From Podarcis tiliguerta (Eukaryota): a DNA stretch of 64,000 bases. A model generated the notes under the pieces. That model made no database searches, was not told where the DNA came from, and saw nothing but the letters and a program-made list of their open reading frames with translations. Shown here one piece after another: positions 8,103-62,891 of the stretch (position 1 is its first letter; each line of letters begins with the position of its first letter). Made by a program: the position numbers and the translations under genes. The stretch is from NCBI GenBank assembly GCA_965153285.1, contig OZ229126.1. One strand, given 5' to 3'.

Positions 8103-8901
8103 TGTCAGAGACCTGGCTGAGGAGTACAACTCGATGAGGAATGGTGGGAACCTACCCCTCCCCCTGTTCATGGCCAGCATCCTGAAACTCCACAGGACCA
8201 GTGGAGTAGTGTTGATTTGGAACAATGGTTTGCTGAAGGGCACAGTTCGGGAGACAATAGCTGGGCGGAACTGAGAGGTGATCAGCAAGAAGAAGAACAG
8301 GAAGAGAGTGAGCTAGCTGACTTTCACTGGAAGATGTGCAGCCTCTCAGTCCCAAGGCTTGGAGGTTAGATAAGGTGGCTTCACAAAAGGCTCAGTGGTT
8401 GAGAGATCAGGTGGCTAGGAGACGAGAGGACGAAAGTGACTGGAGGGAAGTGGAAGGAACCTTAATTGGGAGCACCTCTGAGAATGGTTGCTTGTTCTTT
8501 TGCTGCATTCATTAAACTTTTCTGTTACTGGTAAGAGCATGGGTAGGCAAACTAAGGCCCGGGGGCCGGATCTGGCCCAATTGCCTTCTAAATCTGGTCT
8601 GCAGGCGGTCCAGGAATCAGCGTGTTTTTACATGAGTAGAATGTGTGCTTTTATTTAAAATGCATCTCTGGGTTATTTGTGGGGCATAAGAATTTGTTCA
8701 TTCCCCCCCCCCAAAAAAAATAGTCTGGGCCCTCACAAGGTCTGAGGGACAGTGGACCGGCCCCCTGCTGAAAAGGTTTGCTGACCCCTGGGTAAGAGAC
8801 TGCTTTCTCTTTGTACTGCTTATCTACGGCCAAGGGGCAGGGAGGCAGCTGCTCAATCAGCGTGGAACTTGAGTAGAACTCTGTGGGTTAGTGGTCTGAC
8901 A
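8103..8901 (+). mobile_element. Probable solo LTR interrupted by the hAT MITE
   Basis: Terminal inverted repeat tgtcaga / tctgaca; ATTAAA at ~8511; TSD poorly preserved. Confidence 0.45.
8538..8790 (+). mobile_element. hAT MITE (short form of the family at 38903-39755)
   Basis: TIR-like ends catgggtaggcaaac / gtttgctgacccctg; perfect 8-bp TSD ggtaagag (8530-8537, 8791-8798). Confidence 0.9.
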
Positions 8902-14737: not shown

Positions 14738-14937
14738 NNNNNNNNNNNNNNNNNNNNNNNNNNNNNNNNNNNNNNNNNNNNNNNNNNNNNNNNNNNNNNN
14801 NNNNNNNNNNNNNNNNNNNNNNNNNNNNNNNNNNNNNNNNNNNNNNNNNNNNNNNNNNNNNNNNNNNNNNNNNNNNNNNNNNNNNNNNNNNNNNNNNNNN
14901 NNNNNNNNNNNNNNNNNNNNNNNNNNNNNNNNNNNNN
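14738..14937. other. Assembly gap (200 N)
   Basis: Run of exactly 200 N; true size unknown. Confidence 0.99.
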
Positions 14938-17335: not shown

Positions 17336-17899
17336 ATGTTTGCTTTGAGTACAGGATTAAGAGTAAGATAGAAAACATGCTTTGTTTCAACTAATTTGCA
17401 CAATGGTGTATGTTATTATCACATATTAACTTAATAATAGATTTGCATTCCTAATAGTGAGACCCACTTAATTTTGGCCAGATGGAAAGATAGGGGTCCT
17501 GTACCTTTAACATGGGTGAAGAGGAGGCTACTAAAGGGGCAAGAGCCCTGTCCTCCTTTCCACTAGACCACCCTAATTTGGTAATTCTTTTATATAATGT
17601 GCAGCTGCAACAAGGAGCACCTTCTCAATCGCTTCTGAAAAACTGGAATCCTGCTCATTCAAAACTTGTGAGAACACCTGACCCCAAATGCCCACCTGGC
17701 CACCTCCATCTGCAAAACTGGCACTGCCAGCACACAATGCGCTCCAGTGCTCCCTTCCAGCAATCCTGCAGCAGAAACTGGCCTTGCAAATAGGTTGCCA
17801 GCTTATCAACCCGCCTCTGCTCCTGTGCTGCGGCCACCGGTAGCCGGGAGGGGTGGGGCTGCCCCCCATCAAGGAAATAAATAAAAAATGCTGAACTAA

Positions 17900-18910
17900 C
17901 CAACCAGTTGCGTCTCAGAGACCTCGGCTCTGCCTCCGCCAGGGCTGGGGCTGTGGGGCACTTTCATGTGTCCGGTTCATCTCCCTCCGAGAAGCCCCGT
18001 CAGCAGAGGGCCGACTGGAAGGAAGCACTGGGGGCCAAGGGAAGCCCCGGCCGCGTCACGGAGCCCAGGACGCCGAGCGCCCCCGGCCCCGCTCTCCCGG
18101 TTCCAGAGCAGCCCGCCCTGAAGAGGCGACGGGACGCGAGCACCGTCGGGCGGAGCTCCCCCTGCCGGGGAAAGCGCGGCCCCGCCGTCGGCGCGCCGCC
18201 TCCCGCCCTCCCTCCGCCTCCGCCGCCGCCTGTCGCGCGCCGCTGGCTCGCCCCGACGCCTGGGCGGGCGGACGCTGCGATGGAGGAGGCAGCTGGCCAG
18301 CCCCGCCGCGCCACCCGGCCAGCCCCGCCGGCCCGCAGGAGCCCCCGCGCCGCCGCCGCCGCCGCCGCCTGGAGGTGAGTGCCCAGCCCAGCCGGGACCG
18401 CCCTCGCCCGCCCGCCCGCCCGCTCCTCCCGCGGCGCATCCCGCGCCCCGCTGCCCGCGCCCTCGCTCCCTCCCCGCCGGCCAGGCCGCCCTCTCCCCGA
18501 CCCGGCGCAGCGCTGGGCTCGCCCTCGGCGGAGCCGGGCGGGGAGGCGGCGGCGGCTCGCAGGGAGGGGTGGATCGGGCCCCGGCGAGCGACGCGGGCCG
18601 GTGGCGAGGCTCTCCCTGGCCCTGCAAGACGCGGGGGACGCTCTTCCGCGACTTTTTGAAGGGGTGGGGCGGGAGCCCGGAGTCCTCCTTGGCCCCCGTC
18701 CGGACTGAAGGCCCAAGACAAGATTTGCTATTTCTGCTCCTGCTTCGTGTCATTGGGCACAGTATATCGAAAGCAAACTGCCTGTCCCTCCGCCGGCGGG
18801 CATGGGGGGGGGAGGCGGGGGGGCGGGGAGGCAGAGCATCTCTGCATGCACAGCCTCCAGAGGCGCATTGCCTCCCCGCGCAGGTCAGTCCGCTTCCAGT
18901 CCGCTTCCAG
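17900..18910. promoter_or_regulatory. S1PR2: CpG island, probable S1PR2 promoter
   Basis: Abrupt ~1 kb GC- and CpG-rich block in an otherwise CpG-depleted window. Many GC boxes (GGGCGG/CCGCCC), contains a strong + strand splice donor. Link to S1PR2 inferred from the known two-exon structure of S1PR genes. Confidence 0.85.
18200..18374 (+). other. S1PR2: Predicted S1PR2 exon 1 (5' end approximate; donor GAG|GTGAGT at 18374/18375)
   Basis: Consensus 5' splice site inside the CpG island. Exon carries a (GCC)7 tract at 18349-18369 and a Kozak-strong ATG at 18280. TSS cannot be placed from sequence. Confidence 0.7.
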
Positions 18911-36504: not shown

Positions 36505-38902
36505 GCATGACATTACCCACTTCGGTAGCTTACTGAGAAATACTCCTGTCTGATGCACTTTCTCTCAAACCAACTTCCATCCAATTTGAAAACAGAAGCT
36601 AGAGTTAAACTGAGATGGATACATTTCAGGCAGCAGTGGAACAGGTACAGGTGGCAGCCCTGGTGAATCGGAGATCAGCACAGGAAAATAAATTGGTTAA
36701 TGGGCATTTGGTGAAGACATCTCTACTCTTCCCCTGCTCTGAACAGCAATGTATGAATATGACTAGGAATCCGGGGGGGGGGGGCGACTTCGCTGCATTT
36801 CAAGCCACTGATTATTATGCACGTGAATGTGTACATACCCAGGGTCAGGAAACATGGGGATCATGGGAACTGTAGTTTAAGGGTGCTGGGAACTGGAGCT
36901 CTGTGAATTGGAGCTTGCAGTTCCCAATAATCTCTTTTGTTGTGTGTGGAGGGGGGGTGCACTTAAAATAGATGGTATGTACCCAGCCTTAATCTTATCA
37001 ACTGTAATATCATTGTTGATATTAGCATTGTAGGTGAGGCTTTTCTTAACTTCCGCATAAAGATGCTGAAATGCATACACTAGACAGCATCTTTAGTTCC
37101 TTGGTGCTTTAAAGAAACAACTGGTTTCCTTCAAAAGAGCAAGGAAGTACTGGACCTGAAGCTGACTAGGTTAACCTGCCCACAGTCTTTGGGGGCCAGT
37201 TGCAATTAGTAGCAAAATGGCTTCATTTGAACCTTGGCTGCATCTCTCAGAATAGATTCTCGCTTGTTTTTTTAAAGGATGCTGAAGAGTAAGAGACCCA
37301 TGTAACAATTGCAGAGCCCAAACAATCAAGGCAGGGAACCTGTCTTGCAACTTTTCAGAGTAGTTCGGTTTTTGAATGGGGGAAAAGTTGGCTCTGTTAT
37401 GTCCCCCCCCCCCCAAAAAAAGCTCCCTAGCCCAAATCCACAAAACAGTTTTGCAACTGTTTTTAAAAAATATGTTAAAGGGCCATGTATGTGTGGTCTC
37501 TATATCTATAATATAAATATAATAATTTGCTAAAGCTTTGGGGAGATGGATCCATCCTGTTAGTTTGCTTTGAAAGATGCCACAGAAGTCGAAGTGCCCC
37601 AGCCCAGCAGCTGCTGTGCACAGAGGAAGCTTTGTACCGGCACATCAAGCTCAGTGCCCCCTTCTGCTTGTGTGACTCTCTGCCTGCCAGGCAGCCTCGT
37701 GGAGCTTTGCTTTGCTACTGATGTGGTCTTTGGCCATCACTCTTGGGTCTTGACACAATTCCCCAGAGTTTGGGGAGGAGCGTTGAGTTGCCCTCTAGTA
37801 CAGCGCTGTGAAAGTAGCAGCTTGCTACGGCAGAGATGCAAGGGCTTGGATAAGGACACTGGAAATATTTGGAGAATTAGTTCAGATGCCGTCTTTAGCA
37901 TCTTAGCATTCTTCCCCGGAGAGGAGGGGCTTGTGCAGGGATTCTTTCCCGTTTGTGTTATGGAAACTGCTGGTGCCCCCCCCCCAAGCCTTTTCAAGCC
38001 AATGTTTGTAGGAAAGTGACTGGAAGGCGGCCAGAGACAAACACACCTTTTGCCACATGCAAGTGAGTGGGTGCAAATCATTTATTTTCCTGGGTTATCG
38101 TAATGTTTGTGTTGCAGCTGTAAGGCTAGAGACAAGCAGCTAAAGACCGTTCAGAAGGCAAATGTTTTGAAGGGCCTTTGTGCCCCACACTCCCTTCCAT
38201 AATGAACCTACCCCCTCGCTGTAGGAAAGCCCTTGCCAGCCTGGTGCCCTCCCGGTGTTGTTAAGAGACTACAGTTCCCATGAGCCCCAGCCAACTCCAA
38301 CAACAGTTGGAGGGCACCTGGTTGGCAAAGGCTGCTGCAGGACATTAAGGGGAGCCCTGCTGGGGTGCGATTCTTTGGAAGATGCCTGGCCATGCTGACC
38401 CTCCATGCCAGCTCTAGGTAAATACGTTTGGTAAATTTTTGTATTTCAAAAATCTGCAAAATGTGTTTGTCAGAGGCGGTGGTGAGGTAAAAACAGGGTG
38501 TCTCCCAACTGTCTGCCTCCAGCCAAAGCGCTGGTGTTTTTTCTCAGAACGTCTTCCTAGTCACTCTTCTCTTTCCTCATAACTTCTCTCTTGCAGCTCC
38601 ACGTTTTAGGAATGCACTCCCCTCTGACATTCACCTTCCTCCTCCTTGTTTTCCAAAACCTGAATCAAGATTCATCTTTCCTCCTGAGTTTTTCCACACT
38701 GGCTCCACAAATTTGGCATTTTGAAAGCCTTCTGCCCTTCCCTTCCCTGCTTTCTGCTTTGCTTTTTCCAAATATGAGCCTGCCCCACAGGCATCATGTA
38801 TTTCTTCTGTAGGTTGCTTAATTTTTAAGTACTTATTAAATGTTTGTCACCCCGCTTACCCAAGTGGAGACTTTGGTACATGAAAAGCCTATTGCATTAC
38901 AA

Positions 38903-39755
38903 CATAGGTCGGCAAACTAAGGTCCGCGGGCCGGATCAGGCCCAATTGCCTTCTAGATCCAGCCTGCGGGCGGTCTGGGAATCCAGGCAGCCAGCATAGT
39001 GCACGTGCGCAATGGTTTTTGTGACTCAGCCAGGCTTGGGGGTCAAAAGTGAGGGGGGGCGGCTGCTTGAGACAGGCCCCTTCTCCGTCTGTCCCTCCAT
39101 CGCGCGTGTGCAGCAATCTTTACTTCCGGGGTGGGGAAGAGGGAAAAGGAGCCACAGTTCGGATTTCCACCATGGAGCTGCCGGCGACTGACCTCAGGAA
39201 GGGCAGGGGCTCGGAGGCGCCTCGGGAACGATGCCCGTTGGTGTCTGTGACCGTGGTGCTCCCTGCCAGAGAAAGCCAGGAGCGCCTGGGCGGCTGCACT
39301 CTGAAGCAGTTCTGCGCTCTGCTGGGGAGGCCACTCGTTAGCTACACGGCCTGAGCCATGGAAAGATAAATAGCTTCCGCCACCTCGTCTTCCCTCACGC
39401 GGGGAAAAGTAAATTTTTGCCTCAGCAGCGCCCGCCTGGCTTAGCATGGCCAAGGGCTTTTACCTTCACATGCGCACACGCTCTCCAGGGCTGACAGGAA
39501 TAGCGCTCTTACCTTAGCCCCCCACGCCGCCTTATGAGAGAAATAATAACTGCCAACGCGTAAAACACAAAAGAAGCAGCGTGGGTGTATGAGGGAACAA
39601 CCCTCCCCCCAAATCGCATTTGGGCAACGTTGGGGTTGGTCCCAATAAGGGTTTTTGCCAAAAATGCAGGTCATAATCATGGCAACATACATAATCATGG
39701 CCCCCCACAAGGTCTGAGGGACAGTGGACCTTCTGGAAAGGTTTGCTGACCCCTT
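38903..39755 (+). mobile_element. Non-autonomous hAT element carrying a captured host gene fragment (Pack-hAT)
   Basis: Termini cataggtcggcaaac...gtttgctgacccctt are shared with the short MITE at 8538-8790. 8-bp TSD cattacaa (38895-38902) / ctttacaa (39756-39763). About 710 bp of CpG-rich internal sequence. Confidence 0.9.
39172..39365 (+). pseudogene. CRPPA: Transposon-captured, decayed first coding exon of CRPPA (ISPD, CDP-L-ribitol pyrophosphorylase A)
   Basis: ccaccATGg start. Translates to [64 protein letters not shown], versus recalled human [41 protein letters not shown]. Ends AG|ataaat (decayed GT donor). In-frame TGA at 39352-39354. Confidence 0.85.
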
Positions 39756-41550
39756 CTTTACAAGAAGGGTGTAGCGAAGCAGCTAACGGCAACGCTACAT
39801 GTTAGAATTGCTTTGGGAAACATGAGTGTTGCCCCAGTGCACATGTGAGTCTCAATGCAGCAAATGCATGAAGTGGGGAAATGGCCCAGTCAGGTTCCCC
39901 ACATTTACACCCCTTTTTTTTATCTACCCAGGGTGGATTAGAAGGCCCTTTGGCACTTTCCAGCTGGTCTCTTCTCGTGTTCACTTGCTTCACTGCAATA
40001 CTTTCCCTCTGCGCTCCTAAGGTGTGGGCTGTAAGGAAGGAGGTCTCTCTCTCATGTCCTCCCCCTGTGCTTGGGGGCTTCTGTTCACTCCAGAGGGTCT
40101 GCTGTGAAAGAGAGTTCTCCCGCCAGCTATGCCCCGTGGATCAGGTCGGTCTGTCTGGGAGGCCCATAATTTGATGGTAGAGCAAATTTTGCATACATAT
40201 AATTTCAGGTTCACTCTCCAGTAGAAAGGATTGGGAAAGACCCATGCTGGACTTTGGAGAGCTGCCCAGATGGAGGTGGTTATATATTAGACTGGGTAGA
40301 CCAGTGGCCTGACTCCCAATGTGTCCCACCCGGAGGCTCCTGCTGGCACCAAAAGCCTGCCTCCTGCCCCTGCTATCAGGGTGAACCACAAGCTTCCCCA
40401 TTTTACCATCCCTACCCAGTCTGTGGATATATCTCTTCCTGCTTTGCTTCTATTTCTGCTTTTAATCTCCTTTAGTGAGGAGGAATTGATCCCATTTCTC
40501 TCTCCCAGTGCCCTTGGGATGTATAGTGGGTGGGTGTGTCTGGGCTGTCTGGTCTTGCGATGAATGAGCTTTTGGGAGGGGCAAGCAGGGAACAAGGCCT
40601 CCTTCTGTGTGGGTAATGAGCTCCCTTGGACAGCAGAAAGCTTGTGTCTTGGGAGGATCCAAACAAGCTGCCTTATTGTCGCCAGAACAGCTATCAGTGA
40701 CAGAGCTGGAGGAGCAAAGGCAGCTTCATTCTTCTAGCAAAGCTAAACCCAGAGAAAGCAGGCCCTAAGGCTCTGCAATGGGCCATGGGGAGAAAGACAG
40801 GAGGAGAGCCGGGACAGTATTTGTATGGGATGGAGACTTGTAAGTCATCACTGGGGATTTGCTGGCCGGAGGTGTGCCATTCCTCCAGCTTTCAGTGCTA
40901 GCAGCTCGTCGTCTCTCAAGGGTGATCTGGATCAGGCATGGGAATTGTTAATTCTTCATCATGCATGTTTTTCGGGGAGCAAAAAGGATGGTCTGTTAGA
41001 GGAGCTTAATGGCGTATACTGTTAGTATTCATGCCATGTCCACCTTCCAGCTGTCAGAGAAGTGTGACTGGTTCTCCATTGCTCAGCCTTCGTTTTTAAT
41101 TAGTTTTTTGGGACTTGCATCAAAGAAGCAGCACTTAGAACAGTGTCATCTGCACGGCAGCCGAGGAGGAGACAGGAGCAAGGAGCCTTGTCATACTGCA
41201 ACTACTGCTGCTGCAGCAGCAAAAGGAAACATAGAGGAAAGAGAATATGGTGGTTCTAAAGCAGTGGCAACTCCTGACCAGGCAAAAAGTAAGCCGAGCA
41301 AGAGTGGCAGCAGAGGCAGGTCAGGGGAAGGATGAAATTGGGAGGGGGGCACGCAGTGTGATCTGCCCTCAGCCCACCCCACCCCCCAGCCTGGCTTGGT
41401 CCTGCTTGCTTTTCCAGTTTTGGGTTTTATTTTTTTAAGTGAAATACAGGGCAAAGGACTGGTGACTGCTGGATCCTGAAGCTCTAAGGACTCAGCTAGA
41501 CTGGTAAAGAAAAAGCTATTTATATGTGTTGTATGTGCGATATAACATTG

Positions 41551-46092: not shown

Positions 46093-46526
46093 TACATCCT
46101 TTGCCAGCAGGCTGCCGACAGAGATGATTACGTGGCAATTGATAATAGCCAGGTGTAAATCTTGACTATTGAATTCACTCTGGAGATAAGAGTGAACAGG
46201 GGATTAACCTCTAATGCTCTGAAAAAGCTGTTTTCTGCATTGGGAGACTGTCAGCTCCTGGAAACCTTCACAGGTGTGAGCAACTTATGAGTGGAGGACT
46301 CTACATCGTACCCAAAAGCCACCTAAGAACCCCAATGGGCATGGGATCTGCATAAGCCCCCCTTTTAAAATAATCTCTGAGATAGTTATAATTTACAACT
46401 AAAAGAGGTTTCTCTGTCTGCTGGTGGAAATTTACATTCAGTGTGTGAGCTACTTACTGGCTTTAAGAAGAAGGGAAGGGAAGTCAATCATAGAAGGGCT
46501 GGAGGCAGAACAAAAAGCATGCATGG

Positions 46527-46886
46527 GGGGACGCGGGTGGCGCTGTGGGTAAAAGCCTCAGTGCCTAGGGCTTGCCGATCGAAAGGTTGGCGGTTCGAAT
46601 CCCCGCGGCGGGGTGCGCTCCCGTCGCTCAGTCCCAGCGCCTGCCAACCTAGCAGTTCGAAAGCACCCCCGGGTGCAAGTAGATAAATAGGGACCGCTTA
46701 CTAGCGGGAAGGTAAACGGCGTTTCTGTGTGCAGCTCTGGCTCGCCAGAGCAGCGATGTCACGCTGGCCACGTGACCCGGAAGTGTCTCCGGACAGCGCT
46801 GGCCCCCGGCCTCTTGAGTGAGATGGGCGCACAACCCTAGAGTCTGTCAAGACTGGCCCGTACGGGCAGGGGTACCTTTACCTTTA
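46527..46886 (+). mobile_element. Sauria SINE, full length, near-identical to 13921-14282
   Basis: Same subfamily diagnostic tail ctagagtctgtcaagactggcccgtacgggcaggggtaccttt. Confidence 0.92.
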
Positions 46887-47312
46887 CTAATTGTTTGAGC
46901 CAAGAAAGTTTTAAACGAACAAGGGAGTTCTGAGTGCTAATAATTTTTATTTTCTTTATTTGTAATTTTCTGTTTTCTCAATGAAAGTGTAGCCTTGAAA
47001 CTGAAAGTAATTTTGCCACTTCATACTTCCTCTGTGGGAAAGGAATATGTTTTGATAACACTGTGAACATTTTAAAGTGGAGTCGGGAATTGTAAATAAG
47101 ATCAAGAACATTCAGTCTTGCAAATACATTGTTGGACATTTACCTCCAACCCATTTCAAAATAAAAAAAGACTACAAAGCCTTATTGGCTGCAAAAAAAG
47201 ACAGTCTGAATAAAACTCTTGGTCTGTGTTGCTGAACGCTTCGCTAAATAATGATAGAAATAAATAAATAAATGCCCAGTAGCACCTTAGAGACCAATTA
47301 AGTTTGTTCTGG

Positions 47313-61835: not shown

Positions 61836-62891
61836 ATGGGGAACACCTTTGATTCCTACTTCAACAAGCACAAGATTGTGGAGCACTACAACTACACCAA
61901 GGATAGGCTGGAGAAAGATGATGACCCTTCACTCTCAAGCGGCTCTGTGGCTATCATTGTGCTTTGCTGCTTTATAATCCTGGAGAACCTGCTGGTGCTC
62001 ATGTCCGTCTGGAGGAACAAGAAGTTCCACTCGGCCATGTTCATCTTCATCGGCAACCTCGCCTTTTCAGACCTGCTGGCTGGCTCAGCCTTCATAGCCA
62101 ACGTTGTCCTCTCGGGCCCAGCCACTTTCCACCTCACCCCGCTGCTGTGGTTCGTGCGAGAGGGCACAGCCTTTGCTACTTTGGCAGCCTCCGTCTTCAG
62201 CCTGCTGGCCATTGCCATAGAGCGGCATGTGGCCATCACAAAGGTGAAGGTCTACAGTAGCGACAAGAACTGCCGTATGGTGCTTCTGATTGGCGCTTGC
62301 TGGGTGATTTCGGCGGCCATTGGGGGGCTGCCCATCCTTGGCTGGAACTGCATACATGACCTTGACAAGTGCTCCACTGTCCTACCGTTTTACTCCAAAC
62401 ACTACGTTGTCTTTGTGGTCACCATCTTCACCGCCATTCTCTTCTCCATTGTGGTCCTCTACGTCCGGATCTATCGCATCGTCCGCTCCAGCCATGCTGA
62501 GATGGCTGGCTCCCAGACTATAGCCTTGCTCAGGACAGTCACTTTTGTCCTGGGGGCCTTCATCATCTGCTGGCTCCCTGCCTTCATCATCCTCTCAATA
62601 GATGCTTCATGTGCCAGGAAGTCTTGCCCCATCCTTTTCCAGTCGAAATATTTCTTTGCCTTTGCTACCCTCAATTCAGCCATCAACCCTCTCATCTACA
62701 CCCTCCGCAGCAAGGACATGAGGAAGGAGTTCCTGCGAGTCCTCTGCTGCTGGGGTATGATGGGGCAGGGGAAGCCGTCAGAGCGTTGCATGATTCCCCT
62801 CCGCAGCTCCAGTTCCTTGGAACGCTGCACCCAAAAGCAGGACAATCCTACTGCGCCTTTCATGAAGAAGGAACATTCCACTTTTGTGTGA
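61836..62891 (+). CDS. S1PR2: Sphingosine-1-phosphate receptor 2 (class A GPCR, EDG family), 351 aa, intronless coding region
   Basis: ATG at 61836 in strong Kozak context (gccATGg). Translation MGNTFDSYFNKHKIVEHYNYTK...ENLLVL...KFHSAM...GNLAFSDLLAG...WFVREG...SLLAIAIERHVAITKVKVYSSDKNCRM...GWNC...CSTVLP...CWLP...NPLIY...PLRSSSSLER...STFV matches S1PR2-specific motifs as I recall them from human S1PR2 (ERHVAIAKVKLYGSDK, VRSSHADMA, PLRSSSSLER, C-terminal T-x-V). Seven hydrophobic segments, N-glycosylation site NYT. Confidence 0.97.
   Translation: MGNTFDSYFNKHKIVEHYNYTKDRLEKDDDPSLSSGSVAIIVLCCFIILENLLVLMSVWRNKKFHSAMFIFIGNLAFSDLLAGSAFIANVVLSGPATFHLTPLLWFVREGTAFATLAASVFSLLAIAIERHVAITKVKVYSSDKNCRMVLLIGACWVISAAIGGLPILGWNCIHDLDKCSTVLPFYSKHYVVFVVTIFTAILFSIVVLYVRIYRIVRSSHAEMAGSQTIALLRTVTFVLGAFIICWLPAFIILSIDASCARKSCPILFQSKYFFAFATLNSAINPLIYTLRSKDMRKEFLRVLCCWGMMGQGKPSERCMIPLRSSSSLERCTQKQDNPTAPFMKKEHSTFV

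Follow-up and report, generated by a model that had tools for sequence, protein, structure and literature searches.

How does the 5′ end of the CRPPA (ISPD) gene come to lie inside a DNA transposon, in front of the S1PR2 coding exon of a lizard? In a 64,000-nucleotide stretch of Podarcis tiliguerta DNA (the whole of which we call the window), positions 38903–39755 hold an 853-bp hAT-type element. Both of its ends are shared with a 253-bp MITE at 8538–8790, and ~700 bp of CpG-rich DNA stands in place of the MITE interior. The element and its surroundings divide into the following features.

8538–8790, plus strand: unloaded 253-bp MITE of the same family (arm identity; perfect 8-bp TSD ggtaagag).
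38895–38902, no strand: left TSD, cattacaa (7/8 identical to 39756–39763).
38903–38983, plus strand: left arm of the hAT-type MITE, including its TIR (85% over 81 nt to 8538–8618).
38984–39011, plus strand: junction stretch, CRPPA upstream DNA or diverged MITE interior, beyond the reach of the protein proxy; holds CACGTG.
39012–39171, plus strand: CRPPA 5′ leader or promoter-proximal CpG-island DNA with small frame-shifting gaps (aligns to Podarcis CRPPA models); acttccgg at 39122.
39172–39366, plus strand: decayed coding part of CRPPA exon 1 (48/60 to Podarcis CRPPA; tblastn E 2e-48).
39366–39367, plus strand: former splice donor, AT here and GT in most other copies (contig variants; protein similarity ends here).
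39367–39671, plus strand: non-coding remainder of the cargo, putatively the beginning of CRPPA intron 1 (joined to the exon in contigs from other copies).
39672–39701, plus strand: right junction with a 12-nt direct repeat (39672–39683 and 39690–39701).
39683–39755, plus strand: right arm of the hAT-type MITE, including its TIR (80% over 79 columns to 8712–8789).
39756–39763, no strand: right TSD, ctttacaa (read from the sequence).
61836–62891, plus strand: S1PR2 coding exon, given for context (phmmer to human S1PR2 structures, E 2e-139).

The outer parts of the element are those of a transposon. Its left arm matches the MITE at 85% identity over 81 nt, its right arm (39683–39754) at 80% over 79 columns, and a 24-nt motif in the right arm is identical in the two. 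These end motifs are confined to the two elements within the 64-kb window, and two matches arose in 0 of 100 shuffles. The focal TSD is conserved at seven of eight positions (we calculate a probability of ~4e-4 for such a match at one given place), and the MITE is flanked by eight of eight (ggtaagag, 8530–8537 and 8791–8798). In both elements and on both strands the terminal 16-mers fit a CAGGGGTCGGCAAACT-type pattern, forming short TIRs that start CA/TA..G and are shared by a repeated family, whose arms accumulate contigs thousands-fold over the flanks in three species. The 8-bp TSD, which is that of the hAT superfamily, and the CA..G-type inverted ends are the basis of our hAT assignment. 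No autonomous hAT partner (transposase plus matching ends) lies within the 64-kb window. Both the ends shared with the MITE and the 8-bp TSD had been read correctly in the original prediction, and the sequence supports the 853-bp element being a non-autonomous, MITE-like hAT with foreign cargo.

The cargo differs from its surroundings in composition. Across 38984–39690, GC content is 0.58 and CpG observed/expected 0.65, against 0.20–0.23 in the flanks and 0.28 in the whole window; 38851–39550 (GC 0.59, o/e 0.66) is borderline for a CpG island, in a sequence that is decaying. E-box-like, AP-1/ARE-like and ETS-like strings are present, together with ccaccATGg at 39172 and AG|ataaat at 39365/39366. 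All of these, the reading frame and the 12-bp repeat had been pointed out in advance, and each was located. The second copy of the direct repeat, 18 nt from the first, lies within MITE sequence. A contig from another copy of the family spans this right junction (39568–39729) with listed gaps of only 1–2 nt, so the duplication scar seems to belong to the family and to be present in other copies too. At the left junction, 38984–39011 is faintly like the usual MITE interior (loose ends after 38983), sharing a weak GCCAGC...CGCGCA-like string.

The 60-codon frame that opens at 39172 has a sole PDB match, human ISPD/CRPPA (4cvh, E 7e-5); the human CRPPA sequence given in the original prediction agrees with chain 4cvh_A as aligned by HMMER. 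Among 1.84 billion representative proteins, phmmer returned 11 matches at E ≤ 1e-3, all CRPPA/IspD, and Pfam recognized IspD in all ten of the matches scanned. The named CRPPA matches are those of a snake (E 4.5e-7), a turtle (E 6e-6) and a bird, so that the CRPPA/ISPD match expected for 39172–39365 was obtained by a protein-level search of the frame. A further search, seeded with the snake protein, recovered named squamate CRPPAs. Closest are Podarcis raffonei and P. muralis CRPPA, identical at 48 of 60 positions of an N-terminal alignment; the agreement extends to the weakly conserved residues 1–24 and to the Cys of the RLGGC motif. Identity to the cargo frame drops with phylogenetic distance, to 72–74% for Rhineura and Elgaria, 57–67% for iguanians, Varanus and Hemicordylus, and about 50–59% for gecko, snakes and turtle (a mammalian-looking protein in alignment A2, P0009, was set aside and left out of the comparison). 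This gradient, and the closeness to Podarcis even in the lineage-specific N-terminus, identify the donor, as far as sequence comparison can place it, as the CRPPA gene of a lacertid-type ancestor. We take the gene to be the donor because its exon 1 shows conservation across turtles, birds and mammals. The window contains no other CRPPA exon; like that of a Pack-TIR, the interior of the element is from a host gene residing elsewhere.

The homology does not begin at the ATG. With residues 7–123 of the P. muralis model as query, tblastn finds 39028–39366 in one frame (80/118 identical, E 2e-48 in a local database), the only CRPPA match in the 64 kb; it includes 48 codons 5′ of the ATG and ends exactly at "AMER". 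Podarcis models begin at an upstream in-frame ATG and thus translate the leader, making them a proxy for non-coding DNA; the cargo frame contains a stop, which was written as X or avoided by querying separate pieces, and no residue was put in. The leader segments aligned in this way are SQAWGSKVR... and ...KGATVRIST of the Podarcis CRPPA models. By our own reading, the first residues of the model (MVF.T) can be read at 39012 after a 2-nt gap offset, and the weakly matching 39055–39128 matches in another frame (AAA.D.PLLR). On this proxy, CRPPA homology spans 39012–39366, including 160 nt 5′ of the ATG.

The original prediction had called this 5′ DNA a promoter. CRPPA DNA 5′ of the ATG was captured, as that claim had it; it is mostly 5′ leader, Podarcis models reading through the equivalent of 39012–39171, and at most ~28 nt were captured further 5′ of the leader, perhaps themselves MITE-derived. 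CpG-island promoters have dispersed starts. The ETS-like string is 50 nt upstream of the ATG at 39172. Activity of the cargo as a promoter or exon trap is a candidate property.

To look for further copies, contigs of four public runs were compared with 38500–40150 at 85% likeness: from species A (the window's own), B and E, with one further run of E, X16, guessed to be RNA. In run X1, summed contig depth is 8–13 on the unique flanks, 70–1,296 in bins of the cargo and 30,000–386,000 on the hAT arms, and the profiles of X5 and X9 have the same shape. In the three lizard species the cargo thus stands 5–150 fold over single-copy flanks; part of the depth over its 3′ half could come from an unrelated repeat in the intron. 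Summed contig depth is not copy number, but the count of distinct contigs over one cargo position, which is independent of depth, reaches 43 (X1), 34 (X5) and 26 (X9). Junctions between arm and cargo recur in other contigs (38907–39053, 38903–39036 and 39568–39729). At the left junction, one record each from X1, X5 and X9 carries 195–434 letters of foreign flank and reaches the first 45 nt of CRPPA-derived DNA. A 477-letter contig of X16 is another family copy that runs through the exon/intron border, not CRPPA mRNA. The original prediction had hoped for many TIR-flanked copies; the read data indicate them, with different flanks at the left junction. No single contig was seen to hold TSD, arm, cargo, arm and TSD of a second locus, as de Bruijn contigs break in the repeated arms. 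We conclude that the loaded element has most likely multiplied to dozens of copies in several related lizards.

The family appears to be old. Sister copies differ from the focal copy by ~12–14%, which would place amplification, very roughly, tens of millions of years back. At the focal locus, flank contigs of species B and E, 3–4% diverged, run from unique DNA into both arms, and no empty site was seen in the contigs of the three species. Examination of the orthologous site, which the original prediction had proposed, therefore finds one insertion common to all three, dating it by these contigs to before their split. Many sister copies in the three species skip or replace ~75–85 nt of captured leader (39048–39128), which suggests a deletion subfamily forming most of the copies.

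Related copies have also entered protein databases. The best match of the cargo frame is a Zootoca vivipara calcium-sensing/V2R-like receptor model (XP_034992723.1, E 6e-16), in which residues ~432–522 (~90 residues) are a cargo copy: the leader end, then exon 1 to AMER. This segment sits between the ligand-binding and 7TM domains, a region with no NCD3G Pfam match, and is followed after AMER by the 7TM exon, which makes the captured donor the predicted splice site; it is either a real exonization or an annotation artefact. A 69-residue Podarcis lilfordi protein (P0145), named D-ribitol-5-phosphate cytidylyltransferase/CRPPA, has transposon-type residues and ends at a read-through stop after AMER. 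Rather than the gene, it seems to be a transposon copy of CRPPA exon 1 whose frame is open.

Our explanation, to which we give a probability of about 0.85, is that the focal element is an old, decayed member of a lacertid-type non-autonomous hAT family in which the CRPPA 5′ end was captured as DNA and then multiplied. The strongest competitor is an unlikely one: the CRPPA block might be multi-copy for another reason, by segmental duplication or in a different mobile element, and merely be nested in a MITE here. Contigs that skip parts of the cargo, and the lack of any contig that spans the whole of a second copy with both arms, are compatible with such nesting, but it leaves unexplained why both arm–cargo junctions recur in other contigs. 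The flanks of the focal locus are, moreover, single-copy, and inside the element there is no inner TSD, no poly-A and no second set of ends. Less probable again, at a level we regard as slight, is a single local capture, in which the MITE at the focal site took up CRPPA DNA and never moved once loaded. That would suit the presence of one loaded copy only in the window, and nearly all Pack-TIRs of an animal survey are single-copy (PMC8277862). Against it, three species have multiple copies of the cargo together with its exon, the flanks in junction contigs are different ones, and the Zootoca and P. lilfordi proteins contain related copies.

In CRPPA, exon 2 (ISWISDIVV) follows AMER; the cargo does not continue in this way, and tblastn finds exon 2 nowhere in the whole window. 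At the exon end the focal copy has AG|AT and most other copies AG|GT (AG|GTAAAT): in X1, X5 and X9 respectively, 15, 13 and 12 contigs, most of the depth there, have A>G at 39366. In contigs from other copies the exon runs on directly into the downstream DNA (39241–39461, 39165–39486 and 39304–39493), which is why we read 39367–39671 (~300 nt) as probably the first part of CRPPA intron 1. A processed retrocopy of CRPPA mRNA landing in a MITE would account for leader and exon 1, both of them transcript sequence, but not for similarity that ends with exon 1 without exon 2 or poly-A, nor for a GT donor in sister copies followed by ~300 nt of non-coding DNA; we give it practically no weight. Because homology stops at the exon end, exactly where most sister copies have GT, the transcribed leader, the whole first coding exon and the donor were copied as genomic DNA, as the original prediction had argued from the decayed donor and the non-coding DNA beyond it. 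Chance CRPPA likeness in an ordinary transposon interior is just as negligible: the focal 60 residues do fall under the Pfam IspD threshold and give no match, but the E values against Podarcis CRPPA in the local database (2e-48) and against snake and turtle CRPPA among 1.84e9 proteins (4.5e-7 and 6e-6), and the shared lineage-specific N-terminus, speak against coincidence.

The focal cargo has decayed since its capture. TGA at 39352–39354 occupies an Arg position of Podarcis CRPPA and of two other copies; Leu44 of the cargo frame replaces Pro of the gene, and Arg33 replaces Gly in the LPAGG motif. The original prediction had attributed the TGA and a CTG codon to CpG decay, a reading that fits the Arg and Pro found at these positions in Podarcis; by our own codon reading, the Gly>Arg change would also be at a CpG. 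Four codons after Gly11 are missing (a 12-nt deletion). Rather than a complete open nucleotidyltransferase domain of CRPPA/IspD, the frame covers the exon 1 part only: the focal cargo is a gene fragment, not a gene, and this copy is dead.

These observations suggest a history for the CRPPA-loaded hAT family. In an ancestor, and elsewhere in the genome, a single capture would have replaced the interior of a founder MITE with ~0.7 kb of CRPPA DNA, comprising leader, first coding exon, donor and probably ~300 bp of intron 1. We think it most likely that a break, or a gap repair that was aborted, within the MITE was filled by DNA synthesis in which the growing strand switched template to the CRPPA CpG island, a region of open chromatin, and then back; a switch of this sort would account for the 18-nt duplication scar on the right. 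As the transposon kept both its ends, a hAT transposase acting in trans could have moved the loaded element and multiplied it to dozens. Before the three species separated, one copy would have landed in sense orientation 22 kb 5′ of the S1PR2 coding exon, and it would then have decayed by gaining a stop codon, a 12-nt deletion and CpG transitions and by losing its donor. Substitutions shared between copies (Gly>Arg/Lys, Pro>Leu/His) are at CpG sites and could be recurrent, which makes a single capture tentative. Breakpoints, microhomology and the intron identity of 39367–39671 are putative, the parent gene being represented by Podarcis CRPPA protein models.

Elements of this kind are known. 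In a survey of 100 animals, Tan et al. (2021, Nat Commun 12:4280) found 370 Pack-TIRs, of which 208 were hAT and many came from mammals (PMC8277862). The original prediction had held gene capture of this type to be rarely reported in amniotes, which the many mammalian cases weaken; what is rare is multi-copy Pack-TIRs, with 4 of 370 in the survey and three copies in a frog example (PMC8277862). The only lizard genome surveyed, anoCar2, yielded 0, and the proposed origins were gap filling or template switching, the route that we favour here, and, rarely, transposition of a loaded element (PMC8277862). The lizard element shares with animal Pack-TIRs and Pack-hATs its non-autonomous TIR structure, its interior of host gene DNA and its TSD. 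It is unlike the surveyed ones in belonging to a family with dozens of copies in several species, and in having a 5′ gene end with a donor as cargo. It is a further Pack-hAT of a known kind, notable for copy number, age and spread across lacertid species.

The bat Helitron HelibatN3 captured the promoter, first six codons and splice donor of NUBPL (Grabundzija et al. 2016, PMC4778049; Thomas et al. 2014, PMC4224331), and is a proven promoter donor and exon trap with thousands of copies (PMC4778049). Both systems combine a 5′ CpG-island region with a first coding exon and a donor, and both were amplified after capture; the Zootoca model that splices from the captured donor is an analogue of HelibatN3 exon trapping. 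The carriers differ: HelibatN3 is a rolling-circle Helitron that acquires DNA by read-through transduction, whereas the lizard carrier moves by cut-and-paste and has the TIRs and 8-bp TSD of a hAT. So does the scale, with thousands of copies and demonstrated promoter activity in the bat and dozens of copies and a candidate promoter activity in lizards. Plant Pack-MULE, Pack-CACTA and Pack-TYPE elements likewise hold gene fragments between TIRs and are amplified, but belong to other superfamilies and another kingdom and often combine several gene fragments. Deletion derivatives of maize Ac/Ds-type hATs contain filler DNA from aberrant gap repair. Like the lizard element, they have lost and replaced their interior, retain the ends and show a short duplication where filler and element meet; Ac/Ds filler is usually short, in contrast to the ~700 bp of gene 5′ end here. 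Our literature search brought up nothing relevant on these TIR strings, squamate transduplication or hAT capture in Podarcis.

Cut-and-paste gene capture is well documented in plants; the one broad animal survey met almost exclusively single-copy cases, inferred that elements seldom transpose once loaded, and lacked usable lizard data. The CRPPA family, with its many sister copies and a living parent gene, offers a vertebrate system in which capture breakpoints can be read. The same family could serve to ask whether host genes are rewired by mobile modules of leader, first exon and donor, as they are by bat Helitrons. A broader and tentative idea, which we think doubtful, is that the lacertid hAT MITE lineage has taken up CpG-island 5′ ends of genes again and again, each loaded form then being amplified to dozens of copies; among TIR transposons it would then be the counterpart of the bat Helitron promoter and exon-trap system. 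On that view, the modules it scatters could start host transcripts or be spliced into them, as the Zootoca receptor model hints. In practical terms, copies annotated as genes or exons, such as the 69-residue P. lilfordi 'CRPPA' and the chimeric Zootoca receptor, mean that lizard annotations need screening.

The S1PR2 coding exon lies 22 kb downstream of the element. It opens with an ATG, has an acceptor-like ...aatacag just 5′, and encodes a protein 88–89% identical to those of Anolis and Salvator, as would suit a lizard belonging to neither family. It is on the same strand as the cargo, so the sense orientation that had been claimed holds. Upstream of the element, a CpG island at 17801–18900 (GC 0.74, CpG o/e 0.86) has long ORFs on both strands and could be a candidate promoter or first exon of S1PR2 or of a neighbouring gene. 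If it is the S1PR2 promoter, the element would be intronic, and its location within an S1PR2 intron is plausible on this layout. A run of 200 N at 14738–14937 is an assembly gap or a masked stretch. Another CpG-rich patch, at 46401–46900, was considered as a second Pack element and rejected as a tRNA-derived SINE (~46520–46890). In X16, which has no contig on the left flank (38500–38890), a 229-letter contig of depth 4 runs from the right hAT arm into unique downstream flank (39716–39931), and could be read-out from the element, S1PR2 pre-mRNA or DNA carry-over.
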